A stretch of 64,000 nucleotides of DNA, taken from assembly GCA_002269645.1 (NCBI GenBank), contig NIVC01000600.1, positions 124,001 through 188,000 on the forward strand, written 5' to 3'. A model generated the notes under the pieces. That model had not been told where the DNA came from. It did not search any database and saw only the letters and a list, made by a program, of their open reading frames with translations. A program made the position numbers and the translations under genes. Positions 10,479-61,700 of the stretch are shown in pieces (the first letter of the stretch is position 1; every line of letters begins with the position of its first letter). This stretch comes from Macrostomum lignano (lineage: Eukaryota).

Positions 10479-10511
<33 letters not shown>

Positions 10512-10543
10512 TGACTGTCTGCCTGCCTGTCTGACTGTCTGCC

Positions 10544-10600
<57 letters not shown>

Positions 10601-10603
10601 GAC

Positions 10604-10642
<39 letters not shown>

Positions 10643-10671
10643 GTGTCTGTCTGTCTGTCTGCCTGCCTGCC

Positions 10672-10711
<40 letters not shown>

Positions 10712-14972: not shown

Positions 14973-15279
14973 CATACATGCGCAACAGTCGGCCGAGTCG
15001 GCCAATCTGGCCGACCAATTTGGTGGCCAACCAAGGAAGTCGCAAAAATGCCCTCCCAAAAAAATAACCAAGTAGTAGTACTAAGCAGCTGACGAGGCAT
15101 TTTGGCTTAATAAGACAGTTAATAGAGTTATAGTTACTCCTGCCGTTTACCCAAAGTTGCGTTTCTTTTGCTTTAGGGTTTTTTACATGTAAGTCACATT
15201 TTTGGCCAAAAACTATGTCGCATTTTTTGTTAAAACTAAGTTGCATGGCCGACCGAATTTCGGAGGTTGCGAATATATG
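14973..15279. mobile_element. hAT-type MITE, copy 2 (inverted relative to 9338-9633)
   Basis: TIR CATACATGCGCAAC (14973-14986) / GTTGCGAATATATG (15266-15279). TSD TTACCAAA / CTACCAAA (7 of 8). The body is the reverse complement of copy 1. Confidence 0.88.
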
Positions 15280-28100: not shown

Positions 28101-31100
28101 AACTGCGACAGCTGGGACGGCTGCTACTGCGGCTGCGGCTTCTTTCACTGTTGCTTCTTCTCAGGAGCAGTCAGCTGTGCAGAAAGGCGGACAGACCAAC
28201 GTAAGTAATTTTTTCTTAGGAAATAAATCTACATTTTACTTTTTAATTCGTCAATAGCGAACTCTTCTGATTCTTTCTAATGTAACGCATTCGGCGTAGC
28301 TTTATTTTTGAACATGACATACTTTTTAGTCTACTTAAAGTAGAAAGTAAAGCATCTTTGCTCTATTTTTTGCTTGCAAATTGCTGCAAACTAAATTATT
28401 GTACACACAGTGCACGGAATGAGTGAGTAGTCTGTTTGTTTAAAGCCTGCCGAATGAAGAATGCAAACTGTGCAGCGACTAAGGAAATATGAAATACCTT
28501 ACCTATCTACGTCACTCTACATGTAAACTGATAATGGAATTTCCTTGCTGAGCAACAAGATTTACTCTAGCTAGCATGGGGAGGTAAAACAGGGTCAACC
28601 TTGGCAAGTCAGCTAACTTGTGTGGCGTAGTGAATGAATGACTTGAGTGGCGGGCTTTGCAAAGCAGAGCGCATATAGCATATAGCATGATATATGCGTC
28701 ATGCGTGCGACTGGCAAACTGGCGCTAGCGTAGCAATTTCAACACCCTGCTGGCCTTAGCCTTGGTTCATGGGTTTTCGCATTTTTTGGATCAAAGTAAA
28801 AAATCGATTACCCCTTTAATCCTAACTTTTCTGGTTTCGCGCCATCTGCTTTCGGTTTCACCTAGTTAATAGAATTCCCAAGTATGACTAACGACTTGTT
28901 GAAACAGAACAGGCGGAAATGCAAGCCGGCATACATTTCGTACAGTCAGTCGCTCTCTGTGCATCATGCCTTAATTTGTTAACAGTTGCCTGTCTCTTCC
29001 AACTTGCTATAGTTGTCTCCGCTTATGTGTGAAATTGGGCGATGCGCAATTTCGGTTCAGATTTGAATTGATTTTGTTATAATTAGAAATCCTTCCTAAC
29101 TAGTGAATGAAGACGCTGTCGTCTTCAAAGGTGGGACGATGGTTTATATTGTGTCCATTATTGTTTATGGCTATGACATCTATTTATTTAACCTAAATTG
29201 AGAGCTAAAAAGCCCCCCACGCTCCTGGCATTAGTTAGTCTAGTGGTATAGTGGGGGACTGGCCGCCCCCCACGCCCCTGGCATTAGTTAGTCTAGTGGT
29301 ATAGTGGGGGCTGGCCGCCCCCACGCCCCTGGCATTAGTTAGTCTAGTGGTATAGTGGGGGGCTGGCCGCCCCCACGCCCCTGGCATTTGTTAGTCTAGT
29401 GGTATAGTGGGGGGCTGGCCGCCCCCACGCCCCTGGCATTTATTAGTCTAGTGGTATAGTGGGGGCTCGCCGCCCCCCACGCCCCTGGCATTAGTTAGTC
29501 TAAGTGGTATAGTGGGGGGCTGGCCACCCCCACGCCCCTGGCATTAGTTAGTCTAGTGGTATAGTGGGTGGCTGGCCGCCCCCCACGCCCCTGGCATTAG
29601 TTAGTCTAGTGGTATAGTGGGGGCTGGCCGCCCCCCACGCCCCTGGCATTAGTTAGTCTAGTGGTATAGTGGGGGGCTGGCCGCCCCCCACGCCCCTGGC
29701 ATTAGTTAGTCTAGTGGTATAGTGGGGGGCTGGCCGCCCCCCACGCCCCTAGCATTAGTTAGTCTAGTGGTATAGTGGTATAGTGGGGGGGCTAGCCGCC
29801 CCCCACGCCCCTGGCATTAGTTAGTCTAGTGGTATAGTGGGGGGCTGGCCGCCCCCACGCCCCTGGCATTAGTTAGTCTAGTGGTATAGTGGGGGGCTGG
29901 CCGCCCCCACGCCCCTGGCATTAGTTAGTCTAGTGGTATAGTGGGGGGCTGGCCACCCCCCACGCCCCTGGCATTAGTTAGTCTAGTGGTATAGTGGGGG
30001 CTGGCCACCCCCCACGCCCCTGGCATTAGTTAGTCTAGTGGTATAGTGGGGGGCTGGCCGCCCCCACGCCCCTGGCATTAGTTAGTCTAGTGGTATAGTG
30101 GGGGGCTGGCCGCCCCCACGCCCCTGGCATTAGTTAGTCTAGTGGTATAGTGGGGGGCTGGCCGCCCCCCACGCCCCTGGCATTAGTTAGTCTAAGTGGT
30201 ATAGTGGGGGCTGGCCGCCCCCCACGCCCCTGGCATTAGTTAGTCTAGTGGTATAGTGGGGGCTGGCCGCCCCCACGCCCCTGGCATTAGTTAGTCTAGT
30301 GGTATAGTGGGGGGCTGGCCGCCCCCACGCCCCTGGCATTAGTTAGTCTAAGTGGTATAGTGGGGGCTGGCCGCCCCCACGCCCCTGGCATTAGTTAGTC
30401 TAGTGGTATAGTGGGGGCTGGCCACCCCCACGCCCCTGGCATTAGTTAGTCTAGTGGTATAGTGGGGGGCTGGCCGCCCCCCACGCCCCTGGCATTTATT
30501 AGTCTAGTGGTATAGTGGGGGGCTCGCCGCCCCCACGCCCCTGGCATTAGTTAGTCTAAGTGGTATAGTGGGGGGCTGGCCGCCCCCACGCCCCTGGCAT
30601 TAGTTAGTCTAGTGGTATAGTGGTATAGTGGGGGCTGGCCGCCCCCACACACCTGGCATTAGTTAGTCTAGTGGTATAGTAGGGGGCTGGCCGCCCCCAC
30701 GCCCCTGGCATTAGTTAGTCTAGTGGTATAGTGGGGGCTGGCCGCCCCCACGCCCCTGGCATTAGTTAGTCTAGTGGTATAGTGGGGGGCTGGCCGCCCC
30801 CCACGCCCCTGGCATTAGTTAGTCTAAGTGGTATAGTGGGGGGCTTGCCGCCCCCCACGCCCCTGGCATTAGTTAGTCTAGTGGTATAGTGGGGGCTGGC
30901 CACCCCCACGCCCCTGGCATTAGTTAGTCTAGTGGTATAGTGGGGGCTGGCCGCCCCCACGCCCCTGGCATTAGTTAGTCTAGTGGTATAGTGGGGGGCT
31001 GGCCGCCCCCCACGCCCCTGGCATTAGTTAGTCTAGTGGTATAGTGGGGGGCTGGCCGCCCCCCACGCCCCTGGCATTAGTTAGTCTAAGTGGTATAGTG

Positions 31101-34100
31101 GGGGGCTGCCGCCCCCACGCCCCTGGCATTAGTTAGTCTAGTGGTATAGTGGGGGGCTGGCCGCCCCCCACGCCCCTGGCATTAGTTAGTCTAGTGGTAT
31201 AGTGGTATAGTGGGGGGCTAGCCGCCCCCCACGCCCCTGGCATTAGTTAGTCTAGTGGTATAGTGGGGGGCTGGCCGCCCCCCACGCCCCTGGCATTAGT
31301 TAGTCTAGTGGTATAGTAGGGGGCTGGCCGCCCCCACGCCCCTGGCATTATTAGTCTAGTGGTATAGTGGGGGCTAGCCGCCCCCCACGCCCCTGGCATT
31401 AGTTAGTCTAGTGGTATAGTGGGGGCTGGCCGCCCCCCACGCCCCTGGCATTAGTTAGTCTAGTGGTATAGTGGGGGCTGGCCACCCCCACGCCCCTGGC
31501 ATTAGTTAGTCTAGTGGTATAGTGGGGGGCTGGCCACCCCCACGCCCCTGGCATTAGTTAGTCTAGTGGTATAGTGGGGGGCTGGCCGCCCCCCACGCCC
31601 CTGGCATTAGTTAGTCTAGTGGTATAGTGGGGGCTGGCCGCCCCCCACGCCCCTGGCATTAGTTAGTCTAGTGGTATAGTGGGGGGCTGGCCGCCCCCCA
31701 CGCCCCTGGCATTAGTTAGTCTAAGTGGTATAGTGGGGGCTGGCCGCCCCCCACGCCCCTGGCATTAGTTAGTCTAGTGGTATAGTGGGGGCTGGCCGCC
31801 CCCCACGCCCCTGGCATTAGTTAGTCTAGTGGTATAGTGGGGGGCTGGCCGCCCCCACGCCCCTGGCATTAGTTAGTCTAAGTGGTATAGTGGGGGGCTG
31901 GCCGCCCCCACGCCCCTGGCATTAGTTAGTCTAGTGGTATAGTGGGGGGCTGGCCACCCCCACGCCCCTGGCATTAGTTAGTCTAGTGGTATAGTGGGGG
32001 GCTGGCCGCCCCCCACGCCCCTGGCATTTATTAGTCTAGTGGTATAGTGGGGGGCTCGCCGCCCCCCACACACCTGGCATTAGTTAGTCTAGTGGTATAG
32101 TAGGGGGCTGGCCGCCCCCACGCCCCTGGCATTAGTTAGTCTAGTGGTATAGTGGGGGCTGGCCGCCCCCACGCCCCTGGCATTAGTTAGTCTAGTGGTA
32201 TAGTGGGGGCTGGCCGCCCCCACGCCCCTGGCATTAGTTAGTCTAAGTGGTATAGTGGGGGGCTTGCCGCCCCCCACGCCCCTGGCATTAGTTAGTCTAG
32301 TGGTATAGTGGGGGCTGGCCACCCCCACGCCCCTGGCATTAGTTAGTCTAGTGGTATAGTGGGGGCTGGCCGCCCCCCACGCCCCTGGCATTAGTTAGTC
32401 TAGTGGTATAGTGGGGGGCTGGCCGCCCCCCACGCCCCTGGCATTAGTTAGTCTAGTGGTATAGTAGGGGGCTGGCCGCCCCCACGCCCCTGGCATTTAT
32501 TAGTCTAGTGGTATAGTGGGGGCTGGCCGCCCCCACGCCCCTGGCATTAGTTTCTCTAGTGGTATAGTGGGGGCTGGCCGCCCCCACGCCCCTGGCATTA
32601 GTTAGTCTAGTGGTATAGTGGGGGCTGGCCGCCCCCCACGCCACTGGCATTAGTTAGTCTAGTGGTATAGTGGGGGCTGGCCGCCCCCACACCCCTGGCA
32701 TTAGTTTCTCTAGTGGTATAGTGGGGAGTTGGCCGCCCCCACGCCCCTGGCATTAGTTTGTCTAGTGGTATAGTGGAGGGCTGGCCGCCCCCACACCCCC
32801 GCTCCCCCACCCCTCCGCGCGTTGTTGTTGGGGAGGGTGGTTGTTGTTGTGGGGTTTGCGTAACGTGGGGGCTGCCGCCCCCACACCCCCGCTCCCCCAC
32901 CCCTCCGCGCGTTGTTGTTGGGGAGGGTGGTTGTTGTTGTGGGGTTTGCGTAACGTGGGGGCTGCCGCCCCCACACCCCCGCTCCCCACCCCTCCCGCAC
33001 ATTGTTGTTGGGGAGGGTGGTTGTTGTTGTGGGGTTTGCGTAACGTGGGGGCTGCCGCCCCCACACCCCCGCTCCCCCACCCCACCCCTCCGCAACTTTT
33101 CCCACCTCTAACACATCTTTTTAGCATGCTAAAACTGCTTGTAAGCCTTTGGCGACCGCGCAACACATGATACTTGCCGATATGTATCGTAATATTCTTT
33201 CTGCACTAACAAATCATCTGTGCCGCACTTTCAGCTTCACTCTTACTCTTTAATAAGGTATACAAGGAAAGGAAAATTAAACAATCAATATTAAATTATA
33301 TTCAAGTGAAAGAGAATTGAAAATACTAATAAATCCGTTCCTGCTAAAAAATTAAATATAAAAAAAACTTGGCCCACTTGGGATTCGAACCCGTGTTTAG
33401 GCCATTTACAAAGCAACTGCCTTCGGCCCCGATCCATCTCTTACTTAAGCGAAGCTCTACAGTGCACGCCGTTTATATCGAATATTCCCTATGGTAGCCA
33501 CTTTTACGATTTTTGCTGCTTTTTCATACATTTCTGCTCGCTGCATCGCAGCGCCTTCATCTAAAAATGCGAGTCGCATGTCGTTACAGAGATAACATCA
33601 AGGCGCATTCATCTAATGCATTTTTAAAGTATGTCAACAAATTTTACGCCTCCTAGGCGCCAAATTGTGCATTTTCACCTGTTCTGACAGGTATTCAAAC
33701 AGGTATTAAGACCTATTAACTTAAGAATCAGTTTTCAAAACTAATTTAGTTGCACAGTGCATCCATAGTGCTGTTTTTAGACACCAAAATTGAGTCTCTA
33801 GGCCTTGCCAATGCAGAGTTATTAGCAAAAGTATGCTCAAAATTTGCCCAAAAATAGCCTTCTCAAAATTCGGAGCCAATTTTCTCAAAAATACGAATTT
33901 TCCAGCCATATTGGCGTATGACCGGTGTAACTTCATCTATTCGACTAAACAATATTGAAAATGCAGAAAAATCGGTGCGCAAAATTTCTTATTTTTCCAC
34001 TTCAAAGTTTGTACCCCAAAATGGGCCGTTTTTCACTTAACAGGTAAAAAGTACCTGTTAACAGGGGTTTTTTCAGGAGTGTCTTATGTCATTCAAAAGG

Positions 34101-37100
34101 GCATCCGATGGGCTACAATTTGACGCCATACTCGAAAAACTTTGCCCCATTTTAAAAAAATTTCCTTAACAACGTCTGATTTTCTGCAGTGCCCCCCGGC
34201 CTCTTTTTTCCCTGGTTTTCGGGTCACTGCTCAGCACAGGTAGGTCCAAATGCTTAGAAAATTTAGGAAAACAAATTTCCATATGTTTGACACATCGTGT
34301 TAAAGTCTCACCACTGTAGCATAAAACACTTTTTCAAGTTTGAGGACTACTTTTTTAAAACGTGACCCAATTTTTTGAAAATGTCGTTTTTAGGCACTCT
34401 TTGGCACCTGGGCAGGTTATTGATGGCCCAATAAGCCAAATCTCGATGTTTCCGAATAGAAGACATCTATTTGAGTAATTTGGTGTAGAAATATTAAAAA
34501 ATAAAGTTTTTAATCTCGACGAGATAGGCCTCACAAAAGTGCACTAAAAATTTGTACTTTTAAAGTGCAGATAGGCAGCCATGTGAAAAGTACATTTTAG
34601 CCCTAAAAACTATAGCGCATCAAACAGCCCCAGGTGTTATTGACGCTATGAGGCAGCTCAAAGGCCGCGCTATCGCGCGTCCTTTTCGCTGCGGTGAGGC
34701 AAAGTTGGAAAAAATGCCAATTTTTCGACCTCAAAAAACACGTTTTTTGTACTTTTAGCCTAGACGTTAAAGTACAATAAAAAAATCCATTTCTGATCAT
34801 TGTAGCGTTCGAATGCCCGCGTTTACTGAGCCAGCCCGCTAAGCGCTGCCATATTCTCAATCCTTATTTTTTGAGATCAAAGTTTTTGACAAAGTCGAAA
34901 AAACGCAGTTTTTGGTTGCCATGGCAACCAAAACGCATTGCCATGGCAACCAACTATTGTGCATCCGATAGCGCTAGGTCTTTGACACATTTTGGCAAAA
35001 ACCGTTTGTAAATTGGTCGTACCGTTTTTTATTGGCAGCGTTTAAAAGTTGAAAAACGTCATTTTTAGTGTGTGCAACCACGTTACATCTTATCAGGGAC
35101 GATTTCGCAAAAGTAAGCACCATAGAAAAAAATTCTCGCTTCGCTCGCCTTTTTTTCTATACTACTTACTGGCTCATCGTCCCACAACAAGTTGGGTTGG
35201 GGTGGGTAGTGGGCGCGGGCTTATTTGAGACAGGAATCACAGGATTGACTAATTTAAACACATTTTAACTTAAGATAGAAAATGCCTTCTAGATAAGAAA
35301 ATATATAATGGGGTTGCGGGCCGTATGGCTGGTGCTGGCTGGGGATGGTTTGGTTCGCCAGTTGCGTTGTAAAACGCCACCGGAACGAACAACCCCAAAC
35401 CCGATTGAAAATGTAAAGTTATATAGAAAATGACTGGAACGGAATTGGAAAGGGATAGAGGGGTTTGGGGGTGAAGAAAGGACACGACGGGCACAGCGAA
35501 AACTTTGCCCCGATGCTGTCCGTGGGCCAGCCCCTCCTCTCTGTCCTTAATAGTTAGGGGACTTGTCGCCCGCGTACATTTTGGCTTAACGCGGCTGAAC
35601 CAGCCCCCCCCCCAAGCCCTTTGCAGGTCACCAAAAAGACCTCATTTTCGCCATTGGCTCCGTCTGACTCAGCTCCTTTCATTCCCTTCCTTCCAAGTCT
35701 AAACCAAACCTTCTCCCTCCTGATAGCGATGGGGTGGCGGGTTTCGGGGGGGGGGGGGTATCCGACACTTCCAATTATAGGCTGACCCATCCCACCCCCT
35801 CAGCTTTCAGCGCATGTGTGCGCGGGGGGCACCGAAATTGGTCCGTCCGACCCGCGAAATTCATCCATAGAAAGAAGCCTTAGTGCTTGCTTGCGACTGG
35901 CTGAACTGACTTTTAAGAGTCAAGACCCAAACATGCTGTAAATGCGAATACAGCCGGGACAGCAGGCAGTCTGGCATATAGCTTTACCTTACCACTGTGC
36001 GAATGCCACCTCTTGTGTATAAACAACAACTTATTTAGCTAAACTGACTGTAAGACACTGAGCGTCGAACTGCAGCACATCGCGCTTGCTTAATAAAAAT
36101 TTCACGATTCTGTAATTCGCTACCTCGGCAATGAGTCTTGGCGACGGCGTTTACGTCGACGGCAGCTGGGAGTTGAGCATCTTAGTTGATGATTTGCAAT
36201 TAACTCGCCGACTGCGCGTCAACGGCGAGACTCACATAGGCGGCCTGATGCTTCGCTTAGTTGAAGCCATCGACGTGCGAATGGACTGGTCAGATCACGG
36301 CCTGTGGTGGCCGGCGCATAATCGTTGGTTATTAAAAACTCGGCACACCCTTGATCAGTGCGGAGTGCAAGCCGACGCTAAACTGGAATTCCATCGGATG
36401 CACGGCTACGCTCGAGTTCAGCTGCCCGACTTGCAGGAAATAGAAATGCGCCTCAGCTTTGCTCAAACGGTATTTGCTGTTGTAGTTTCCGCCTGTCGAG
36501 AGCTCGGCATCCGTCACCCCGAGGAGCTCTCGTTGCAGGCCGACGGACTTCAGGGCGCCGCGTCTTGCGATGGTAACAACGGCGACAGCGGGGACAGCAG
36601 TAGCGGCAGTCTGCTTCGGACTGGCCATAAAAAGAAGAGCCCGTCGAGTCCGATGCGACCCTCGCCGAGTCCTCGATCGGCCGCTTCGCTTGGCAGCCTC
36701 GGTGGCAGCCTAGGCGACTGCATCGACGGCGGCGGCAGCGTGGCCACCCTGGCTGACAGTCCGAGAGTGAAGGCGACATCGACAGCTTCGCCGCGTCACC
36801 AGCGCGGCAATCGGCGGCCTCCTCGCACGCCGTTAGAACGGGCGGTGGCCAGCGGTGTAGAGTCCTGGCTTGACTCGTCCCGCAGCCTGATGGAGCAGGG
36901 GCTGCGACCCTGCGGCGACAGCTTGTCTAGCGGGCCATTGAGGCTTCGCTTTAAATTTCACGCTCACTACGATTTGAATCCTCAGCTGGACGCTGTTCGC
37001 ATTAACCAGCTGTACGAGCAGGCGAAGTGGTCAGTGCTGATTGGCGAGCAGCAGTGCACGGAGGAGGAGGCCATGTTGTTAGCCGCACTGCAGCTGCAGG

Positions 37101-40100
37101 CCCAGCTTGGCGCCAGGCCAAACGAACCGGCTGCGGGCTCCGCCGGTTCGGCTTTGAACGAAGCCTCGGCGCTGGTTATGCCGTCGTCGAATCTGGCAGA
37201 TGCGGATGCTCAGCTCGATGCTGAGATCGACGCCGACCTTGCCCAGCTGGAGGCGTCGCTGTCTTTGTCTCCAACGTCGGCTTCTGACGGTGTAGCACCG
37301 TCGGTAGTGGCTTCGACGATCGGACGAAGCGGCGCGGCCAGCGCGCCAATAGAAGCCGTGCCCGAGCTGGCCAGCTGGTTGAAGGTCTCCTCAGGCGGCA
37401 GCGGAGGCGGCGTGTTCGCCACGCTGACGCTGCGTGGCGGCGCCGATTCAGGCAAGCGGCGCTATTTGATTTTGCGCGAACTCCAGTTGCTGGTCTGCTC
37501 GGACGATACCGAGGCTGGCCGAACTGAGCCCGTGGCCGAGCTGTCTCTGGCCGGCGCCGAGGTCATGCCGGACACTGCTGGCGGCCGCCTTTCGATTCGC
37601 TTGCTGCCGTCGTCTGGCTCTTCAACTGGCTGGTGGCGGCTGAAATTCGGCGGCGATAACGCCAGGCGGCAGTTCGCCGAATGGTCGGCCGGTCTGAGCC
37701 TGGCCGCGCGAGGCCGAACCCTGGCCAGCCAGGACCTGTTCACCGCCGAGGTGCGAGACATCCTGGCCCGTCTGGAGCTCCAATGTCCAACTATCGCCGC
37801 AGTGTCCGAAGCGGCTGAGCTATCCGCGGAGGAAGTCGTCGAAAACCTGGATCCGACCGACTACTTGCCGCCGGCCGTGTTGAAAAGCGGCGGCAAGCCT
37901 CGGGCTTTGGCCAGGCAGATTCTGGAGCGCCGAGCCCGCGTCCTTGATCGCAGCCGCCTTGACGCTAAGCTGGATTACATCCGGGCCTGGCAGCGTCTGC
38001 CAATGTCGGGCGTGACTTATTTTTGCGTCTATTATAGCGAGCAGCAGCCCGGAGCTCCCGTCAGCTTCGACGATTTCCGTCGCGAGCGCCGACAGCAGAA
38101 GAAGCAGAACCGGCGTCCAGACCTGTTCGGCGTGGCTTTCAATCGGATTATGCGGCTGAACCCGCTGACTGGCGACGCGCTGGCCACCTGGCGCTATCAC
38201 GAGCTGGACTCCTGGACAGTGAACTGGGAGATGATGAGCTTGAGTGCCAGCTTGAACCGGCCGCCGCACTACATGTGCCTGACCCCGTGTCCCAGCAACC
38301 CGGCTCTGAAGCTGAACGTGTGCAAAACCCTAGCCGAATACATTGGCGGCTACGTGTTTCTCAGTCTGAGAAAGCCGGAGAAAAGTCAGCTGCTCGACGA
38401 GCGAATGTTTCAGAAGCTCACCTGCGGCAGGGACGCGGTTTCCGCTTGAAGCACGGGCCAGATGGCAGATGGTTTTGTTGTGCTAGATCGATTATTCGAT
38501 ATCTTCTAGAAGCAGGTCCAGCAATATCGGACTAACTGATCAATGCGTTACAGTCCAGAGATTTTTAATGCAGTTCTGTTTATGGGCTTTGCCTTTGCTT
38601 ATGGCTTGGCTTTTTATGTTGTTTTTTTCAGTTCGAATTGGCGCCTTTTTAAATCAAATACTATATTAGTACATGCATTATTATGGTTCTGCTAATCTCC
38701 ACTTGATATTTGTGCTGTTTTATAGAATCGCGCAAAACTAATTTGGTTTATTATTTTATTAATTTAGACATTCGAAACTATTGTGCAGTCTCGGCATTAG
38801 GAATACGCGCTTAAGTGGAGAAATCGTTGCATATTGTTTTTATTCATTTTTTAATTTTTGGTATTATATAGTATGCATATGGTCAATGGGTATTATTATG
38901 CTGTACATACATTTGCATTAAACGTACCCTCTGCTCTGCTATCGTCCTGATCGAATCTTTTTTTGCTTAACAAACGTTTTGCTTTTGTATTACCAGTGGA
39001 TAACATTATAATATATACATTGATAGTAAAATTTAAAAAATTAGTAATTTCGTGCACGCTTAGCCACTTTTGTGTTTCTTTCATTTAACGTACTTAATAA
39101 AAATACCTGCTGTTAGTTTTCACGACCAGGTGCTCAAGTCAGAGATTATTCTCTGACTTAAGTCTTATTGACAGTCTAAAGGACTAGCGGGATCTCAGGA
39201 CGTCTCAGGACCAGCAGGATCTTATCTCACTCAGGTCTAAGGACCAGCAGGATCTTATCTCACTCAGGTCTAAGGACCAGCAGGATCTTATCTCACTCAG
39301 GTCTAAGAACCAGCAGGATCTTATCTCACTCAGGTCTAAGGACAGGGGGATCTCACTCAGGTCTAAGGACAGGATCGAGGATCTCACCCAGGTCTAAGGA
39401 CAGCGGGATCTCACCCAGGTCTAAGGACAGGGGGATCTCACTCAGGTCTAAGGACAGGAGGATCTCACCCAGGTCTAAGGACAGGGGGATCTCACCCAGG
39501 TCTAAGGACAGGGGGATCTCACTCAGGTCTAAGGACAGGAGGATCTCACCCAGGTCTAAGGACAGCGGGATCTCACCCAGGTCTAAGGACAGCGGGATCT
39601 CACCCAGGTCTAAGAACCAGCAGGATCTCACTCAGGTCTAAGGACAGGGGGATCTCACCCAGGTCTAAGAACCAGCAGGATCTCACTCAGGTCTAAGGAC
39701 AGGGGGATCTCACCCAGGTCTAAGAACCAGCAGGATCTCACTCAGGTCTAAGGACAGGGGGATCTCACCCAGGTCTAAGAACCAGCAGTATCTCAGTCAG
39801 GTCTAAGGACAGGGGGATCTCACCCAGGTCTAAGAACCAGCATGATCTCACTCAGGTCTAAGGACAGGGGGATCTCACCCAGGTCTAAGAACCAGCAGGA
39901 TCTCACTCAGGTCTAAGGACAGGGGGATCTCACCCAGGTCTAAGAACCAGCAGGATCTCACTCAGGTCTAAGGACAGCGGAATCTCACCCAGGTCTAAGA
40001 ACCAGCATGATCTCACTCAGGTCTAAGGACAGGGGGATCTCACCCAGGTCTAAGAACCAGCAGGATCTCACTCAGGTCTAAGGACAGCGGAATCTCACCC

Positions 40101-43100
40101 AGGTCTAAGAACCAGCATGATCTCACTCAGGTCTAAGGACAGCGGGATCTCACCCAGGTCTAAGGACAGCGGGATCTCACTCAGGTCTAAGGACAGGGGC
40201 ATCTCACCCAGGTCTAAGAACCAGCAGGATCTCACTCAGGTCTAAGGACAGGGGGATCTCACCCAGGTCTAAGAACCAGCAGGATCTCACTCAGGTCTAA
40301 GGACAGCGGAATCTCACCCAGGTCTAAGAACCAGTAGGATCTCACTCAGGTCTAAGGACAGGGGGATCTCACCCAGGTCTAAGAACCAGCAGGATCTCAC
40401 TCAGGTCTAAGGACAGCGGAATCTCACCCAGGTCTAAGAACCAGTAGGATCTCACTGGAGGTTGCAGAAAATCATTGATCGAAGTTCATCAATCGCATCT
40501 ATTTGCTACTCCAGGATAATTTCGTAGTGCACAGAAGCAAGGTTGCCTGTGCAGATACTTGTACTGCTTCTGCGCAAGTGTCCCATTTTTGCGACAGCCG
40601 CTTCGCTTGGCCTCGTCTAAAGAGATTTTCAACTGCAACTGTAATCCAAGAGCTTTTCCGCAGCAAAGTAGCAAATTGGGGGCTGAAATATTTCTATACG
40701 GCGCTGGGCGTTGACTTTCGTTCAATACTCGTATAATAATAATAATAATAAAAGTAGGTCCCCAGAAAGGCCTCAGTAGAAATAGCTGGCACTTGTTTAC
40801 CCTGCGTCCAATTCTGTGGATACTGTGGGCAGGCAGGCAGGCAGCGAAAAGGACCAGGCTAAACGCGAAAGTTTTAGCTCGTATCGGGCAAGAGCCATCT
40901 CTCTTTCGGCTTTCCTTCTAGATGCAAGGAGAGAGGGAGATAGAGACGGGTGCATGCGGGGTTATCCCCCGAATCTTTGCAACTTTCTGCAGCGTGCGCA
41001 CTTTCATCGGCGTCTCTATTCTATCCCATGTCTAAATCCCTAAACACTCTGCCGAGGTCCTGCGGCTCCTGCCCGGCTTTGGCCTTAATTTGCCAAGCAT
41101 AAAGAATAGAAAAATTAATGATGGAATTTGTGTGTTTCCTATTATTATTGCATTCTAATGGCTCCAGACCAGCTCAGTTCTGGAGTGTCTAGCCAGCCCA
41201 GATCTAAAGTGTCTATCCAGCCCAGATCTAGAGTGTCTAACCAGCCCAGATCTAAAGTGTCTATCCAGCCCAGATCTGGAGTGTCTAACCAGCCCAGTTC
41301 TCTCTTTCATCGGCCTGTTGATGAGTTAAAGAAATCTAGGCTGGGAAACTATAGTTGCACTTTTAAGTGCTCCCCCTTCCCACAGTTGAGCCTGCAGAAC
41401 CGATCATTGCGGCTAATGCCCTCTGCGCATTTCTCGACTCCCAAACTGGTTTTGCCGGGACTTTCCGATCGAATTCGCTTCCTCTTGCTAATCTCGACTG
41501 CCTCCGTTCGGCTGCTGAGCAATTATATCCCAGCTCCGATTGGTAGCTTCGATGCCGGCTGCCTCCGTTCCCTCACGCTGTGTCGCCATGGCTTTTAAAA
41601 ATGCCAGAGTCCATCCTATCCGCAGGCATCCGAGCGATGGCCACTTGCACTTTAAACAAATGGGGTAGAATTTCAGATCCAACATACTGTACATTGCAAA
41701 ACTGACAACATGATTAATGAGCATATCGGCAATTGCTAGACAACTGTTTGTAGATGTCAGCATTTGCCTACAAACTGTGTCTAGCAAGTTTTCCTGTGGC
41801 TGAAAACATCTAACCAAAATGGGAACAACAGTTGAACCCCGCTCCGCCATCTATCCAAGTCTCAGCTTCCCAACCGTGCTTCCACTGTGTGTGTGTGTGG
41901 GGGGGGGCAAATTGACGCAGAACAATTGATGAAGATCGCATTTATTAGTCCTAGTTATTTGCCAATTTTATAGGCTCTATATTTTTCGGAGTTCTTGTAT
42001 CAACTGCATAAAATGCAGTTATTTTTTAAACAACGAATGAGACAAATATCAGGCTTAAAACGCGATGACACTACTGAATTGTAAGTAGCATAATTAGCGC
42101 CAATCTCGGTGAACACGCGCAACAATTCAGGGCGAATCGGCCGGGCTTGGCAAAGACGAGGACGCCGGGCCTCGCGAGGAATTCCTCCGCGCTCTGGCCA
42201 GCAGCATCGAGATCTTCGTCAACCGGATGAAGGCCGACAGCGTACGCGGCCGCAGCGTTGCAGCCGACGGCACCGTCCAGACGCTGTTTATGACCCTCAA
42301 CCAGATGCACCCGCAGCTCATCGAGCACATGAACCGGGTCGAGGCCCGGCGCAACATTCTGGAGGAGCAGCAGGACAAACTGGCCAGACTGAGGGACGCT
42401 CGAGAGGCGTTGAACGCCCTGCGAGATGAGCACGAGCAGAGGCGCAAGGCTGAGCAGCAGGAGCGGGAGAAGCAGCGATTCGCTCAGATGATGATCAAAC
42501 TGGAGGAGATGCGCCAGAAGAAGCATGTAAGGCCAGCCCATGTTTTTTGTGTGCAACTTTGAATTGACATTTGACTGCCAGTGACATTTGACTGCCAGTT
42601 ACATTTGAATTGTCAGTGACATTTGACTGCCAGTGCCATCTGACTGTCAATGACAATTGTCACCGCCATTAATGGCAATCATACGTGCCGATATGTATCG
42701 AAAAAAACGTGTTTCTCGTTCCGCCTGACAGGAGTTCATGGAGTACCAGCGCCAGCTGCAAATCCAACAGATGGAAGCCCAGCGCCGGGAATTCGAAATG
42801 CGAATGGAGGCGCAGAAGCAGCGCCAGGCAATGGAGCAGTACAAGCAGCAGTTCCCCTATTCGAGCGGCGCCTACCAGCAGCAGTTCGTCCCCCAGCCTG
42901 GGCAGCCCGGGCCTCAGCCGCCAGCTTCAAGCGGTGGCTACGCCATCCAGTACCCGCCGGGCTATCCAGTCCAGCAGCAGCAGCAGCCGCCGCCGCAGTC
43001 AGTCGCTAGTAGCGCCGGTTATTCGCTGCCGCACTCTGCTGCTTCGACTGATCCGTCTGCCCAGTACATGTACCACATGCAGCAGCAGCCACCCAGCTCT

Positions 43101-44139: not shown

Positions 44140-44700
44140 GGCGTCAACCAATCAGCATTTACTTAGATTTGGGGTCTGTTCCAATGTGCACTGAATTCAA
44201 CCAATAAGCATCAACTTAGATTTGGGGTCTTTTCCAATGTGCACTGAATTCAACCAATAAGCATCAACTTAGATTTGGGGTCTTTTCCAATGTGCACTGA
44301 ATTCAACCAATAAGCATCAACTTAGATTTGGGGTCTTTTCCAATGTGCACTGAATTCAACCAATAAGCATCAACTTAGATTTGGGGTCTTTTCCAATGTG
44401 CACTGAATTCAACCAATAAGCATCAACTTAGATTTGGGGTCTTTTCCAATGTGCACTGAATTCAACCAATAAGCATCAACTTAGATTTGGGGTCTTTTCC
44501 AATGTGCACTGAATTCAACCAATAAGCATCAACTTAGATTTGGGGTCTGTTCCAATGTGCACTCTGGCGTCAACCAATGAGCATCGACTTTGATTTTGGG
44601 TCTGTTCCAATGTGCAATCTGGCGTCAACCAATCAGCATCGACTTTGATTTTGGGTCTGTTCCAATGTCCACTCTGGCGTCAACCAATCAGCATCAACTT
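44140..44700. repeat. 53-bp minisatellite (CAACCAATAAGCATCAACTTAGATTTGGGGTCTTTTCCAATGTGCACTGAATT)n, about 10-11 copies
   Basis: Direct copies about 0.5 kb upstream of the orphan gene ATG. Confidence 0.95.
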
Positions 44701-45184
44701 TTGTGGGGACGGATAGTCGCACATCAGATACTATCTAAATGTACACTACAGCGGTAATATTATATTGCATAAGTGTAGTGGGGAAAGGTATATAGCACAC
44801 TAAATTTCTTTTGGATTGTACATATTAATACTTTTCTCTTTTAAAAATTTTTTCTTTATCGAGCATCGAAAATAATCGAACGCACTTTTGTCAACACATC
44901 GTTATGCATGCTCGAGCAAATACATATCGATCTATATTTGGAACGCAGCTACTCGTATAGAGCGATACAACCTCTGGCTGCTTCTCCCCAGCCAAGCAGT
45001 TGTGTTTGTCTATGGGCCGAACTATCGACTGTACCTGCGATTGGAGCCGCTTCGGCTCGGCTTATGCCAAGCTAAGTTAGACTGGACTTTCGTGCACTGG
45101 GAAGGTGAGTTTGTTGCAAAGCAGCGAGAATCACATAAAGCAGCGATCGATTGCAAACTGACTAACGAGCCGGCTGCCAAGACC

Positions 45185-46188
45185 ATGTCTGCCAAGGAGC
45201 GCGTGACCTTCTCTATTGACGTCAACCTCAGCAAGGAGCAGATCAAGTTTGTTGACATCAGCGCGGACACCTACCAGTTTTGTCTATCGCCGATTGAAAA
45301 CGAGAACGAGGCCACATGGCAGGGAAACCCGGCGGAGGCTGACTGGATCTCGGTGAAGAAGGACCAGTACTACCTCATTAAGGCTCGGCCAGGCGAGGCC
45401 TACCAATATCAGAAGATAGCTCAGATTGTACTCACGGAGAAGACCTTCCGGTAAGCGGTACTTTATGCTTGCTTTTTGCAACGTTTCCTGCATTGAGTTT
45501 TGGTAATGTCCTGAGGGTGTCCTATTAAACCGTCCCTTATGTGCCCCGCAGTGTCAAAGAGGTGGACACTCCGCCCAATACTCTGTTCATGACGGTCGAG
45601 CAGAACGAGAAGGCGATGCACTCTATCGTGAACAAGATCGACCAGATCGCGCAGCGCTCGACCCACTCCGACAACAAGCAGGTGCTGGTGTTTGCCGAGG
45701 ATCCGTTTTACACCAACCTGCCAGAGGTAAGCTTGGCATTGGCTGTGATTGTTCTCTCTGATTCTGCTCCAGTTCGGAGATTTCTCGCTTGAATCAGTTC
45801 ACTCGCTCCTTATCCGCTTCCGCACCAGACGGAGAAGGAGAAGTGCATCTGGAAGGACTACACATTCGAGATGGACGTCAAGAACTGCTCGATCCGATTC
45901 GTGAAGGAAGAGGAGAGCAAGGCCATCCTCATGGTGTACAAGGGCGAGAACCAGACCAACGAGGCTCCAATAGTGCACATCGACCTCGGCTCCAACAACA
46001 TCCCTCTTAGCGACCTGAAGCTGGAGCGGCACGCCTTCTACACCTTGTTCGTGAAGCGGGACGCCAGCTCGCCTGACACGCCGGTCATCCTGTTTAAGAT
46101 CACTGACAAGACCGCCATCATCCGGGAGCTGCCGGGCACCAAGCCGCCGGTGTTCCTCAGCTACCAGAAGGGCCACGAGCCTCACTAA
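45185..46188 (+). CDS. Uncharacterised 266-aa protein with an internal two-fold domain repeat; 3 exons: 45185-45450, 45552-45726, 45829-46188
   Basis: ACCATG start; GTAAG donors at 45451 and 45727; CAG acceptors ending at 45551 and 45828; phases 2 and 0 consistent; strong C/G third-position bias; TAA at 46186-46188. No family recognised. Confidence 0.85.
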
Positions 46189-47129
46189 GCGGCCGCACTG
46201 ATGCTTTGGCCCGGCAGTAGAAAGTCCGGTCAGAGAATAGAGTGATTGAGAGAACAGCTGAACAAACACATTTTGATTCTTTACCGGGAGCGGAGCGGCT
46301 GCAGTCGCTTCCACTGGCCCTCCCTGCCGCAGAAAAAGCGATAGTTTGACTCTCTGTTTACGCGTAAAGTTAATTTGCTCGAATGTATCTTGCGAATACT
46401 TTTTGCTTTTTAGAAATACTAAAATCAATCATCATCACAATGCTGGACATTCACTTGCAGAACAAAAATCGGCGCTGATTGAGTCTTTGCACTGGTTTCT
46501 TCAATGCCGTTCTCGAGTTTATGATTATTAAAAGTGCTCAAAATGCTCCTATTTGGTTTAGCATTGAGGTGCTATTCCTCGGTACCTGAATAAGGGAACA
46601 AAACGGAACTGTTTAGATCCAAGAGAAGTGAGCAATTGCAAAACTTGCCCGACACTGCACCGGAGTGTGTATTGTATGAGTTTGAGGATATTTCGGGCCA
46701 AGCATTAAACGATTGATCATTTTTTGTCAAAAGAATTAAAAACTAAAAGCTGGTGCAAAGTAAAAAATCATATTCAGCGGTGCGGGTCGAAGCAAGAAAA
46801 TTAATTAATATAAAAACTGCAACGTCAGTTGTTTGAAGCCACATTCAAATTTCTACATGTTTTTTGCCTGCCTTGTATACCGCTCAGAGTTAACTCCATT
46901 GACAACTGAAGTTGGCGAGACAAAACGTCTTCCGTTTTTTAGCACTGAATTCCAGAATGTGGGATATTGGGAAGTCGCTGCTAAAAAAATGAAAGCTTCC
47001 CATCTCGCCAGTGAATTTTACAGCGAAATCCAGCCGGCACATTGAAGATCGGCACGACTTGCCGATGCAGCGGTTGGCTCAAGCAAGGCTTCTATCTTCT
47101 AGTTAGCTTCTAGTCCCTATATTTAGCCC

Positions 47130-48785: not shown

Positions 48786-49050
48786 TACGGATGTAAACAG
48801 TCGATGAGTCAATGATCACGGATGTAAACAGTCGATGAGTCAAAGATCACGGATGTAAACAGTCGATGAGTCAAAGATCACGGATGTAAACAGTCGATGA
48901 GTCAATGATCCCGGATGTAAACAGTCGATGAGTCAATGATCCTGGATGTAAACAGTCGATGAGTCAAAGATCACCGATGTAAACAGCCGATGAGTCAAAG
49001 ATCACGGATGTAAACAGTCGATGAGCTAAAGATCACGGATGTGAAAAGTC
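48786..49050. repeat. 31-bp minisatellite (GATCACGGATGTAAACAGTCGATGAGTCAAW)n, 8 copies
   Basis: GTAAACA at 48793, 48824, 48855, 48886, 48917, 48948, 48979 and 49010. Confidence 0.95.
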
Positions 49051-49639
49051 GATGAGCTGCAGATCATGGATGAGATAAGGTGTTAGTCAGCTAGGACACA
49101 GATCATGGTTGATGAACCGTCATCCACGATGTGCTAGTTTACTATCTCTTCTAATCAGTAGCACCGAAGATACAATTCGTTACTTTTTGTCATGTCCTGC
49201 TGCCTGCAGCCTGGAAGCAAACACCTCTCTATCCCTCTCACCAAATCAAGTCGACAGTTTAAAGCTTGCTTTTGGAGGGGAAGTCCAGCTGACAAATCAG
49301 CTCATTGTTGAGTGCCCTCTCTCTCTCTATTCAAATAGGTATATTTCTGGCTAATTAATGCAATTGTCTGCTTTAGTGGTTAAAAATAGCTTTGCTCGGT
49401 TTTCTCGAGCGTGGGTGGAGGATACAGTAATATTGCAATGGTTTTCGCTTCAGCCAAGCAGAAGTGCTGGGGCTGCAATATTCAATTTGATTGATTAAAC
49501 CTCCGCAAGCTCTGCGCAGAGATTTCTTCATGGATGTCGGCAGCTGTTTGGCGGGCCAAATTTTTCATTGTATTAATTGGAGAGTTCTTTTTTGTAGAAG
49601 CAATGATGTATAGTAATATATTGTCTTACTTATTATATG

Positions 49640-50900
49640 GTTAGACTGTCAGTGAGCTACAGATCACGGATTTTGAACTGTCAGTGAGCTACATATACTG
49701 GATGCTGAACTGTCAGTGAGCTAGTTAGCTACAGATCACGGATGTTGAACTGTCAGTGAGCTAGTGAGCTACAGATCACGGATGTTGAACTGTCAGTGAG
49801 CTAGTGAGCTACAGATCACGGATGCTGAACTGTCAGTGAGCTAGTGAACTACAGATCACGGATGTTGAGCTGTCAGTGAGCTAGTGAGCTACAGATCACT
49901 GATGTTACACTGTCAGTGAGCTAGTGAGCTACAGATCACGGATGTTGAGCTGTCAGCTAGTGAGCTACAGATCACTGATGTTACACTGTCAGTGAGCTAG
50001 TGAGCTACAGATCACGGATGTTGAGCTGTCAGTGAGCTAGTGAGCTACAGATCACGGATGTTGAACTGTCAGTGAGCTACATATACTGGATGCTGAACTG
50101 TCAGTGAGCTAGTTAGCTACAGATCACGGATGTTACACTGTCAGTGAGCTAGTGAGCTACAGATCACGGATGTTGAGCTGTCGTGAGCTAGTGAGCTACA
50201 GATCACGATGTTAACTGTCAGTGAGCTAGTGAGCTACAGATCACGGATGTTGAGCTGTCAGTGAGCTAGTGAGCTACAGATCACGGATGTTGAACTGTCA
50301 GTGAGCTACATATACTGGATGCTGAACTGTCAGTGAGCTAGTTAGCTACAGATCACGGATATCGAACTGTCAGTGAGCTAGTGAGCTACAGATCACTGAT
50401 GTTACACTGTCAGTGAGCTAGTGAGCTACAGATCATGGATGTGAACTGTCAGTGAGCTAGTGAGCTACAGATCACGGATGTTGAACTGTCAGTGAGCTAC
50501 AGATCACGGCTGATGTCAGTGAGCTACTACAGTCACGGATGTTGAGCTAGCTAGTGATACAGATGATGATGTCAGTGAGCTAGTGAGCTACAGTCACGGA
50601 TGTTGAGCTGTCAGTGAGCTAGTGAGCTACAGATCACGGATAACTGTCAGTGAGCTACTGTACATGTGAGTCAGTGAGCTAGAGCTACAGATCACGGATG
50701 AACTGTCAGTGAGCTACTGTCAGGATGAGCTGTCAGTGAGCTACTACAGATCATGGATGTCAGTGAGCTAGTGAGCTGATCACTGATGTTACACTGTCAG
50801 TGAGCTAGTATAACAGATCATGGATGTTGAACTGTCAGTGAGCTACATATAATGGACGTTGAACTGTCAGTGAGCTAGTTAGCTACAAATCACGGATTTA
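49640..50900. repeat. About 32-40-bp minisatellite (GTCAGTGAGCTAGTGAGCTACAGATCACGGATGTTGAACT)n
   Basis: Direct copies, increasingly degenerate after about 50150. Confidence 0.92.
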
Positions 50901-56099: not shown

Positions 56100-57712
56100 C
56101 ACAGATCTCTTTCTGCTTCGAGTTGCTCTACTCTCCCCTGTTCTCTGTCTCCATTCCCCTGTTCTCTATCTCGTCTCTCCTGTTCTCTGTCTCCATTCCC
56201 CCGTTCTCTGTCTCTACTCCCCTGTTCTCTGTCTCCTCTCTCCTGTTCTCTGTCTCCTCTCTCCTGTTCTCCTGTCCTCTCTCCTGTCTCTTCTCCCCTG
56301 TTCTCTGTTTCTTCTTCCCTGTACTCTGTCTCCTTTCCCCTGTTCTCTGTCTCCATTCCCCTGTTCTGTGTCTCCTCTTCCCTGTTCTCTGTCTTCTCTC
56401 TCCTTTTCTCTGGCTCCTCTCCCCTGTTCTGTTTCACCTCTCCCCTGTTCTATGTCTCCTCTCCCCTGTTCTCTGTCTTCTCTTCCCTGTTCTCTGTCCT
56501 CTCTCCCCTGTTCTCTGTCTCCTCTTCCCTGTTCTCTGTCTTCTCTCCCCTGTTCTCTGTCTCCATTCCCCCGTTCTCTGTCTCTACTCCCCTGTTCTCT
56601 GTCTCCTCTCCCCTGTTCTCTGTCTCCTCTCCCCTGTTCTCTGTCTCCTCTCCCCTGTTCTCTGTCTCCTCTCCCCTGTTCTCTGTCTCCTCTCTCCTGT
56701 TCTCTGTCTCCATTCCCCCGTTCTCTGTCTCTACTCCCCTGTTCTCTGTCTACTCTCTCCTGTTCTCTGTCTGCTCTCTCCTGTTCTCTGTCTCCTCTCT
56801 CCTGTTCTCTGTCTCCTCTCTCCTGTTCTCTGTCTCCATTCCCCCGTTCTCTGTCTCTACTCCCCTGTTCTCTGTCTCCTCTCCCCTGTTCTCTGTCTCC
56901 TCTCTCCTGTTCTCTGTCTCCATTCCCCCGTTCTCTGTCTCTACTCCCCTGTTCTCTGTCTACTCTCTCCTGTTCTCTGTCTGCTCTCTCCTGTTCTCTG
57001 TCTCCTCTCTCCTGTTCTCTGTCTCCTCTCTCCTGTTCTCCTGTCCTCTCTCCTGTCTCTTCTCCCCTGTTCTCTGTTTCTTCTTCCCTGTTCTCTGTCT
57101 CCATTCCCCTGTTCTGTGTCTCCTCTCCCCTGTTTTCTGTCTCCTCTTCCCTGTTCTCTGTCTCCTCTCCCCTTTTCTCTGTCTCCATTCCCCTGTTCTC
57201 TGTCTCCTCTCTCCTGTTCTCTGTCTCCTCTCTCCTTTTCTCTGTCTCCTCTCTCCTGTTCTCTGTCTTCTCTCTCCTTTTCTCTGTCTCCATTCCCCCG
57301 TTCTCTGTCTCCTCTCTCCTGTTCTCTGTCTCCTCTTCCCTGTTCTCTGTCTCCTCTCCCCTGTTGTCTGTCTCCATTCCCCTGTTCTCTGTCTTCTCTC
57401 TCCTTTTCTCTGTCTCCATTCGCCCGTTCTCTGTCTCCTCTCTCCTGTTCTCTGTCTCCTCTCTCCTGTTCTCTGTCTTCTCTCTCCTGTTCTCTGTCTG
57501 CTCTCTCCTGTTCTCTGTCTCCTCTCTCCTGTTCTCTGTCTTCTCTCTCCTGTTCTCTGTCTCCTCTCTCCTGTTCTCCTGTCCTCTCTCCTGTCTCTTC
57601 TCCCCTGTTCTCTGTCTCCTCTCCCCTGTTGTCTGTCTCCATTCCCTGTTCTCTGTCTTCATTCCCTGTTCGCTTTCTCCCCTCCCCTGTTCTCTGTCTC
57701 CTCTGTTCTATC
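56100..57712. repeat. About 21-bp polypyrimidine minisatellite (CTCCTCTCCCCTGTTCTCTGT)n, 1.6 kb
   Basis: Direct copies; source of all ORFs between 56067 and 57769. Confidence 0.96.
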
Positions 57713-58750: not shown

Positions 58751-61700
58751 TCACTCCGAGGCCGTCAGCTGACAAGCGGTGACCAGCGGCGGAGTCGTGG
58801 TGCTGCAGCCGGCGGAGGTGGTGGTGTACACTGTGCCAGCGATGGAGCCCAGGCAGCTCACCGAGGGGAACAGCTGGGTGCCGTAGAACACCTGGTCGAT
58901 CACCCAGTCAGCCGAGTTGAACGGTTCCAGGGCGACGCCCGTTGACGTCGCTGCGGCAGCAGCCGCGGCGGCCGCCGCTGCCTCAGCTTCGAAGTAGGTC
59001 TGCGACAGCAGCTCCGAGATGAGGTACAGGGCGCTGCGCCGCTCCTGCTGCATCAGGCAGACGGTGGAGTTGCACACCACATCAGCCAGAATCTGTGCGG
59101 TTTGGAGGGATAATTTTAAATTCACCCAAAATGTTTCAAGCAGTCTTTTTTGAGCTGGAAACTTGGCATTGTTAAAATCCAGTCCCCAGCCTCACCTGTA
59201 GGTACAGCGTCCTTAGCTGAGCATCGGCAGGTGGAAAATGCGCAGCCAGGTAGGATTGAATTTTCACCCGCTGCTGTCTGGCATCCGGGAAGTCGATGAA
59301 GAACCTGGAGCACATGTACTTCTCCAGATGAGGCACGTCGAGTCCCTGAGCAGGCAGGTAGCCATCCACCAGGAGCTTGCAGTACTTCAGCAGGCCGCCG
59401 CCTCGGATCTGCTCGGGGCAACGGGTGCAAATCTCACGGCGCCGCAGGTGGCCAAATGCCTCCTCGAAGCAGCCGCTGGCAGCCTCCGCAACTACAGTCG
59501 GATAGAAGCGCTCGCTGATTGAGCTGGAGCTGGGCTGCACCTTGTAGAAGGTGATGAGCGAGTCCAGGATGATTTGGAAGCTGTCAACGGTGAACTCAAA
59601 CTGCCGGCGCATGTGGTCAACGAATTTGAGCTCGACAGTGAGTCCGTCTTGGCTGCCCAGGCTGAGCAGGAACCACCTGTCCGCGTGCTCAATCCTGGCC
59701 TGCTTAGACACGTACGCCTCCACCATCTGCAGTTGCTGGGGCAGCGGCCTCTTGGCCTGCGCATCCTGCTCAGTCTCAGAAGAAGTCTCTTCGGTTTTTT
59801 CATCGGCATCGCCGTGCTGCTCGTTCTGGCTGATCAGAAACAAGTGCAGACACTCCAGAACTGCTCTGCGAATGATGTCGACGGTGTCGCGAGAGCTGAG
59901 GTCGACGCCAAACAGAAGGTCAAGGTCATTGTACGTGTGGTACGGGTCCATGCCTGAGAAGGGAGCAAAAGACGTTATTTTAGTTTATTAAATTGGTTTT
60001 TATGCATTCACAACGCTATACATTTAGAAATATAAAGGGTCATGCGGCTGTGGGTTCTGAAGGCCAAGTACGGAAGACCAGAGTTTGAAGGCCCGAGACT
60101 CAGTGCCGAGGGATCAACGCACAATCCCTCTGGCTCTAGCTTAATACGAGATCAAGAGCTAAAAGACTAGATAGGCCAATCTGAGAATACGAGTATAACG
60201 CAAGAACTCGAACGGGCAGCAATAGAGTAGTACGAGCTACAAGTGATTGTCAACCCGCGGCAAAAATCAGAAAGCTCCACCGGCTGAACCTCCCGATACG
60301 CATTATTATTAACAATATAAATACGCCTCAAGTAGTGTCGGAACTGGAGAAGCGTTGGAAATTTGAGTTCGTGGGTGTGTGAATGAAAACATATGGCCAA
60401 TGCGTAATGACTATTTACTATGCCTGAGCCGAAGTCAGGCAGAGACACGGCCGGATAGTGAAAGAATGCAATCGGAGCAGAGCTGAGTAGAGAAGGGAAG
60501 AGACGTTGGGCCCGGAAAAGTGCAACTTGCAAAAACTGCCGACTGCAAAATAGCGCGTATCCGTTTGATATGAGTATCGATTTTTTGAGAGCTGTTTTTA
60601 CATTTGATTCTCCTCTCTCTCTCTCTTTCACTGGTGGTCGCCCCTGAGCACCCAAGTCGTGAGCAGTCTGTCGCAACAAAGCAATTTTCAATTCTAGCTT
60701 GTACAATGCTAACCAGAATACACAATTAAGTTGCTGCATTCATTCATTCATAAATTCGAAGTGGCAAATTGAAGCTCCCAGACACGGTTGAAACTTCAAC
60801 ACAATAAAATTAAGTCTGAAAAGATTTGATAAGACCGCAAATTGGTTATTTTTGCACCTGCAGGCTGGATAGCGCCAGAGTTTCAAGAATTGGTTAGTTA
60901 TACAGGAGAGGAAGAGGCTTGCATATTTCTGCTTGCATTGGCAGTTTTGCTGGCCTAGAAGGCCCTGTTGGATTTCAGTTCAGTGGTCCCTCTAAACTTT
61001 TGGAGAGCGCGCAGTCAGTTCAAGAAGGAGGGCTGGGGGGGGGCGGTTGGTTGCCAGAAAGTTTTATGCAGAGCGCAGCAAAGTGAGTCGAAATCAATTT
61101 GTGTAAACAGTCAGCCAACTCTTCTCCTTGTCTCTCCCCCGGCTCCGTCTTTCTGCAAGCAAATCAAATAGTGCGGTGGTGCGCATGGCACGTGCGTGCA
61201 AGCGGAGTCGGGGGCTGGAAAGTACAAGCGAACTACATTTCGGATTATTAAAATATGTTCACCAGCCATGCTCAGTGCAGTCTGTTTAATAAAACGCTTT
61301 ATTAAACGCTTCAATCCGGTCAGGTTTCCAAAATAAACATGTCATAAACAGCAGCAGCAGCAGCAACAATGGCCAGACCATTTTTTCGGCGAGCTAAATA
61401 TAAAACCACGTTTTCAATGCAACACGCGCTTCAGGACTGAAAGCAGAGAAAGAGAGACGGCGGGCAAGAGAAACTGCGCCGATGCAGATGGAGAGAAGCT
61501 GGCTAGGGGAGCAATAGAAAAGTTTGCTTATTAAAATTAGCGCGTTGAGTTTAATGTTATTCGGTGATAGCCCAGGTCAATGCCACAGCGGTAATGGGGG
61601 GAGGGGGCTGGCCCATCCTAACTCCGCCCGAAACAGACAATGCCCCCCTTCGCTCTCTCAGCTCGTGCCCTTGAAAATTGAATCAGCTGGTTATTGTGTG

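Follow-up and report, generated by a model that had tools for sequence, protein, structure and literature searches.

In a 64,000-nucleotide (nt) stretch of DNA from the flatworm Macrostomum lignano (NCBI GenBank assembly GCA_002269645.1, contig NIVC01000600.1, positions 124,001 to 188,000 of the forward strand), which is hereafter called the window and numbered from its first letter, we analyzed the gene at positions 45185-46188 on the plus strand, whose three coding exons form an 801-nt frame for a protein of 266 amino acids (aa). A previous inspection of the letters alone, referred to as the sequence-only reading, had suspected a flatworm origin, which the source of the assembly bears out, and had described the product as an orphan protein in which a single domain occurs twice. 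Our analysis makes it probable, with moderate confidence, that this is a bona fide M. lignano gene coding for a non-enzymatic, cytosolic beta-sandwich protein that would serve in binding or as a scaffold and that is restricted to Macrostomum in public data. What sets it apart is that a narrow phyletic range is paired with a constraint like that of housekeeping genes.

The gene model is correct as predicted. Coding exon 1 (45185..45450) begins with the start codon at 45185 and carries residues 1-88 plus two bases of codon 89, and is followed by intron 1 (45451..45551; 101 nt, gtaagc..cag, phase 2), which was placed by translation and by alignment with an ortholog transcript. Coding exon 2 (45552..45726) encodes residues 89-147, comprising the end of an N-terminal module, a predicted helix at residues 105-124 and a linker, while intron 2 (45727..45828; 102 nt, gtaagc..cag, phase 0) lies at the start of a C-terminal module, the whole strand-rich extent of which is encoded by coding exon 3 (45829..46188; residues 148-266 plus the stop codon). 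Transcript evidence was provided by three intron-free Logan contigs of 1.15-1.2 kb (L001-L003, from the runs SRR30276812, SRR30276804 and SRR30276815, representing three RNA samples), each with an uninterrupted 801-nt open reading frame (ORF). The first of them, L001, aligned with the window in three blocks, 45185-45448, 45549-45725 and 45832-46186, of which the first pairs with L001 positions 138-401 and the last with positions 582-936 at 87% nucleotide identity. Both coding splice junctions are thus confirmed, because the blocks end no more than 3 nt from the predicted exon boundaries. The clean splice sites and the real gene proposed by the sequence-only reading therefore hold, with GT..AG introns and matching blocks in the ortholog transcript, and transcript support, the lack of which had been named as a ground for rejecting the proposal, was found in the three contigs as well as in two database models, UniRef A0A1I8HDX1 and A0A1I8HKZ0 (P0001 and P0005, respectively).

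Upstream of the coding region, both database models read through a 5′ untranslated exon (44997..45075, plus strand), for which 44997 is the minimum upstream limit, and P0001 splices from it straight to the exon with the ATG. The intervening 94-nt GT..AG intron of the 5′ untranslated region (5′UTR; 45076..45169), which has a branch-point-like motif (ctgactaac) before its acceptor, is removed in P0001, a model of the type of one paralogous locus (L005), and kept in P0005. Upon its removal an in-frame stop stands five codons 5′ of the ATG. The ortholog transcript likewise carries one ahead of its own ATG, and with such stops present in both mRNAs the start codon assigned at 45185 is sound. Downstream, the 3′UTR extends over 46189..46445 on the same strand, its end being approximate, and includes a short element shared with the ortholog transcript: positions 46357-46425 (ctttttgctttttagaaatac...) match L001 positions 1055-1118 at 75% identity (blastn), while elsewhere both UTRs have diverged too far for any similarity to be seen. 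This stretch sits just 5′ of the apparent transcript end, and the L003 contig enters sequencing adapter soon after the homologous point. It may function in polyadenylation or regulation.

Comparison with the databases found the 266-aa protein to be identical to the GenBank entries "hypothetical protein BOX15_Mlig021432g1/g3" of M. lignano (PAA80032.1, PAA92379.1 and PAA92431.1); that is, the gene is already deposited, as an uncharacterised hypothetical protein. It also matches the core of the two UniRef models, both of which begin with translated 5′UTR. Two further loci in GCA_002269645.1, L004 and L005, carry the gene, giving at least three near-identical copies, whereas tBLASTn found no second copy within the 64-kb window. 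L004 is identical over the gene, and L005 has nine exonic differences, all nine of them synonymous, and five intronic ones, four of which fall in intron 1. The flanks are collinear among these paralogous loci, and the extra copies are consistent with the genome duplication that M. lignano is known to have undergone recently.

The strength of selection was evaluated against the ortholog encoded by L001-L003, whose protein (P0006) is 95.5% identical, with 12 differences in 266 residues. The two coding sequences differ at 114 of 801 nucleotides and yet at only these 12 residues, and the Nei-Gojobori method gave a synonymous divergence (dS) of 1.09 and a nonsynonymous divergence (dN) of 0.027, hence a dN/dS of 0.025. 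The ratio is similar in all parts of the protein, namely 0.015 in the N-terminal module, 0.018 in the helix and linker and 0.039 in the C-terminal module. This demonstrates very strong purifying selection along the entire length, and non-coding or decaying sequence is therefore excluded. In codon usage, the GC content at third codon positions (GC3) is 0.83 and the effective number of codons (ENC) is 39, compared with a GC3 of 0.71 and an ENC of 47 in the neighbouring kindlin gene. The sequence-only reading had spoken of a strong codon bias and a probably abundant protein; the bias is real but moderate in degree, and the abundance is suggested by this bias together with full-length assembly in three RNA samples. 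Combined with the slow evolution, these features hint, at low confidence, at a fairly high level of expression.

No family could be assigned to the protein. When the 266-aa protein, the two extended UniRef models, the ortholog and both halves were scanned against Pfam-A with hmmscan at E-values up to 10, only a sub-threshold match to SF3A2 appeared, which lies on the predicted helix; no match was found in NCBIfam, and no relative among PDB sequences, whether by single sequence or by profile. A search of 5.8 billion word-indexed protein clusters (E up to 10), run both with the sequence alone and with a profile of two sequences, returned the protein's own cluster only, which at 90% consists of M. 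lignano and one Logan lineage. An exhaustive HMMER search of 1.84 billion representatives recovered this cluster and two proteins with E-values of 1e-5 to 1e-4. The annotated planarian and parasitic-flatworm proteomes within the NCBI and UniRef sources searched gave no match, and no similar protein turned up among bacterial, viral and metagenomic sequences. Thus, no homolog beyond its own cluster is detectable for a gene that is transcribed and under the constraint described above, and no confident match to a known family was found, so that the lineage-restricted, family-less status perceived in the sequence-only reading was borne out by all of these searches.

Several candidate relatives were rejected. 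P0002, a protein with bacterial cadherin-like repeats (E 1.4e-5), shows a weak collinear similarity of the N-terminal module to each of its repeats and is the only non-self match for residues 26-110; nevertheless, its E-value accumulates across four or five near-identical repeats, and no single stretch exceeds 12.1 bits (independent E ~1e4), a noise-level score. Similarly, P0003, a WD40 protein (E 9e-5), has a best single stretch of only 7.3 bits. Because both scores add up over near-identical repeats, neither protein was taken as a homolog. The Pfam match to SF3A2 (E 0.03-0.1, below the cut-off) and a PDB match to uridine-cytidine kinase 2 (E 0.85) both lie within the helix and linker region and were taken as noise.

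The protein is acidic and has a mass of 30.7 kDa, an isoelectric point of 5.5, a grand average of hydropathy of −0.53 and three cysteines. Neither a signal peptide nor a transmembrane segment was found, the N-terminus (MSAKERV) being hydrophilic and the maximal Kyte-Doolittle hydropathy over 19 residues being 0.58; hydropathy thus bears out the soluble character proposed earlier. Because there is no hydrophobic segment and the N-terminus is hydrophilic, the protein is predicted to be soluble and either cytosolic or nuclear. The protein showed no catalytic motif and no match to an enzyme family.

The predicted structure was examined with AlphaFold2, for which the single sequence was unusable (mean predicted local distance difference test score, pLDDT, of 36). 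With a two-sequence alignment, one of five models folded residues ~6-91 of the N-terminal beta-rich module (residues ~6-105, encoded at 45200..45600 on the plus strand with intron 1 included) as a sandwich of seven to eight strands, with a pLDDT of 66-78 over residues ~6-70 and 53-56 over residues 71-90. The C-terminal beta-rich module (residues ~150-262, encoded at 45835..46173 on the plus strand) was delimited by a strand-type alternation of hydrophobic residues and by low-confidence AlphaFold strands. Between the two strand-rich parts, both AlphaFold runs predicted, at low confidence, a helix at residues ~105-124, which agrees with the helical linker suggested in the sequence-only reading and is amphipathic, with hydrophobic positions at 111, 114/115, 118 and 121/122. 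The leading Foldseek matches of the N-terminal module in the PDB were FN3 domains, CD4, CD2, CD48, CD58 and a type IX secretion system (T9SS) C-terminal domain, with template modelling scores (TM-scores) of at most 0.5 on targets of 75-100 residues, and the two best matches in BFVD were FN3-domain proteins. These matches provide weak evidence that the N-terminal module is an ordinary Ig/FN3-type sandwich. The lineage-specific fold that had been considered earlier is therefore without support, as the one region with a model of moderate confidence appears Ig/FN3-like.

The claim that the protein consists of two copies of a ~110-aa domain was evaluated by several self-comparisons. Every aligner recovered the proposed register as the best alignment, with collinear blocks (residues 8-23 against 159-172 and 54-105 against 209-264) and similar spacing between them (46 and 50 residues). 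When the significance of these blocks was calculated, the first (TFSIDV-NLSKEQIKFV / TFEMDVKNCS---IRFV, 17 residues) had E = 1.2 in BLASTP, and the last, recovered by Smith-Waterman, had a score of 31 with z = 0.5-1.0 under standard penalties. Global alignment and hhalign of the two halves joined all of the blocks, the latter with 22% identity over 102 columns, a P value of 0.28 and a probability of 0.2%. Among 12 combinations of matrix, gap penalty and mode, the best z was 2.0-2.5, obtained with soft gap penalties, and 20-43 of 1000 shuffles reached the score before correction for multiple trials. The hydropathy autocorrelation peaked at the expected offset of 155 with r = 0.22, a value that 944 of 2000 shuffles also reached and that is thus at chance. 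Further, a z of about 2.4 may reflect beta-rich composition rather than ancestry, since shuffling destroys strand periodicity.

By these measures, the two-copy build would be possible but unproven, being indistinguishable from chance. As a non-significant self-alignment had been named beforehand as refuting the duplication, that claim is not upheld: its register is reproducible, while its significance is lacking in Smith-Waterman, BLASTP, hhalign and autocorrelation alike. We accordingly regard it as doubtful that the gene arose by tandem duplication of one novel ~110-aa domain, with homologous halves and a lineage-specific fold. Apart from the common register, the identity between the halves and the z reached with soft gaps, such an origin is favoured by the phase-0 intron 2 just before the C-terminal module, which leaves that module as a single exon; it is opposed by the failure of every test to reach significance, by the composition effect just described, by the absence of a counterpart of intron 1 at the matching position of the C-terminal module, and by the resemblance of the N-terminal model to common Ig/FN3 sandwiches rather than to a new fold. 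Its bolder form, in which the protein is the founder of a Macrostomum-only domain family that arose by ancient duplication of a ~110-residue module with no database counterpart, and in which an abundant, constrained and cytosolic product of a young gene has taken on an essential, slowly evolving role, we consider unlikely.

That the protein is instead a very divergent member of a named family, DUF4139 or immunoglobulin I-set, is less probable still. This idea draws on the UniRef names, by which the 299-aa model is a "DUF4139 domain-containing protein" and the 330-aa model an "I-set domain-containing protein", and on the Ig/FN3-type fold matches. However, neither label could be reproduced in the Pfam scans of the protein, the extended models, the ortholog and the halves at E up to 10, no match reached the gathering score of DUF4139 (PF13598) or of I-set (PF07679), Ig or fn3, and the exhaustive HMMER search returned no member of either family. 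The two names moreover conflict, as they cannot both describe the core, given that the models share the 266-aa core and differ only in translated 5′UTR. The naming of A0A1I8HDX1 and A0A1I8HKZ0 looks like an annotation artefact that is worth flagging to users. Finally, the location of the gene amid dense minisatellite arrays and the absence of homologs elsewhere, as is often seen with very young or foreign genes, could point to a non-coding transcript annotated in error, a pseudogene or a gene acquired from a mobile element, a virus or a microbe. Such an origin is close to refuted by the dN/dS over 266 codons, the purely synonymous differences between the paralogs, the three spliceosomal introns with canonical sites, the collinear flanks of the paralogous loci and the absence of similar proteins among bacterial, viral and metagenomic sequences.

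The preferred explanation therefore remains that of an authentic, lineage-restricted gene for a cytosolic binding or scaffold protein. The protein is laid out as an N-terminal beta-sandwich-like module, a predicted amphipathic helix, a short linker and a strand-rich C-terminal module from exon 3. In such an arrangement, the sandwich modules may offer surfaces for binding proteins or ligands, the helix may act as a spacer or as an element of self-association, and expression would be fairly high. A role in binding or as a scaffold is proposed with low confidence by analogy, because there is no catalytic signature or enzyme-family match and because such folds are generally used in this way.

Several observations weigh against this explanation. 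The two-sequence AlphaFold2 prediction is poor overall, with a mean pLDDT of 40 and values below 35 past residue 92, and the C-terminal module is left with no confident model, because the alignment has only two sequences. None of the Foldseek matches of the N-terminal module is significant (best E 0.1 in the PDB and 0.017 in BFVD), and the TM-scores do not exceed 0.5 even when normalised to the small targets. The known range consists of M. lignano and one lineage at a dS of ~1, and "restricted" describes the available data, since Macrostomum transcriptomes seem to be sparse in the protein collection, where the neighbouring kindlin, for instance, is without a close ortholog and has only paralogs at 45% and 41% identity. 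The identifier Mlig021432 was also not found in the main texts searched or in the available part of the supplements of M. lignano papers, so that no expression or phenotype data came to light under it, an absence that is uninformative given this partial coverage.

Compared with known systems, the N-terminal module is most similar to Ig/FN3 sandwich domains, such as the FN3 domain of PTPRJ (2dle), the ectodomains of CD4, CD2 and CD48 and the T9SS C-terminal domain (8glk_D), in that a sandwich of ~90 residues and seven to eight strands is predicted. It differs from them in that the structural matches are non-significant (E of at least 0.1 in the PDB) and in that Pfam gives no fn3, I-set or Ig match at E up to 10. 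Most Ig/FN3-type domains are extracellular, whereas the protein described here is predicted to be cytosolic and has no signal peptide. The proteins of the DUF4139 family (PF13598) combine beta-rich domains with a helical segment. The likeness to them is one of database label only, as there is no hidden Markov model match, the protein is about half their size and the sister UniRef model lacks the label. A parallel in kind is given by the taxonomically restricted genes of flatworms, such as those reported for M. lignano in PMC5816591, which likewise have no outside homolog, carry a hypothetical annotation and occur in several copies in a duplicated genome; unlike most orphans, the gene studied here evolves slowly (dN/dS 0.025 at a dS of ~1.1) and has a marked codon bias, and it was not found in the accessible portion of the supplementary text of PMC5816591.

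The surrounding window is dominated by long minisatellite arrays (period 20-55 bp, as many as 128 copies) located at 1-4609, 5716-12294, 23038-25727, 29212-33083, 39323-40456, 44144-44700, 48787-50877 and 56127-57704. Examples include a 28-bp unit repeated 128 times at 1065-4609 and a 52-bp unit repeated 68 times at 29212-32800, and an array of ten 53-bp units ends ~300 bp short of position 44997, the minimum upstream limit given above for the 5′ untranslated exon. The arrays give rise to many long spurious ORFs on both strands. Among these, a 421-aa ORF at 22937-24202 on the plus strand had weak Pfam matches (Ssb-like_OB and others), none past the per-domain threshold, and was not accepted as a gene; it was considered a repeat artefact because it overlaps a 44-bp tandem array at 23038-24077. 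The neighbouring kindlin/fermitin-like ORF at 36131-38449 on the plus strand is intronless and encodes 772 aa with Kindlin_2_N and FERM_M domains. No PH-domain match was recorded for it, while a PH domain is present in every homolog among the matches listed, and its two paralogs, which are its closest relatives, are both from M. lignano. The ORF could represent a diverged, lineage-specific copy of kindlin. On the minus strand, an ORF at 59172-59951 has a strong match to the Pfam nucleotidyltransferase family NTP_transf_7 (E 5e-76) and probably belongs to a conserved gene as one of its exons. The stretch at 14001-18000 is AT-rich, with a GC content of 0.29-0.31, the window being otherwise 45-60% GC.

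Apart from its constraint, the gene is one among many thousands of uncharacterised flatworm proteins, and nothing in this analysis points to a new mechanism. Its role would be directly testable, as both transgenesis and RNA interference are available in M. lignano. Orphan genes usually evolve fast, and for this reason the pairing of a narrow range with housekeeping-like constraint is unusual; if the explanation put forward here is true, M. lignano would possess a lineage-restricted gene that is held under constraint of the housekeeping kind.
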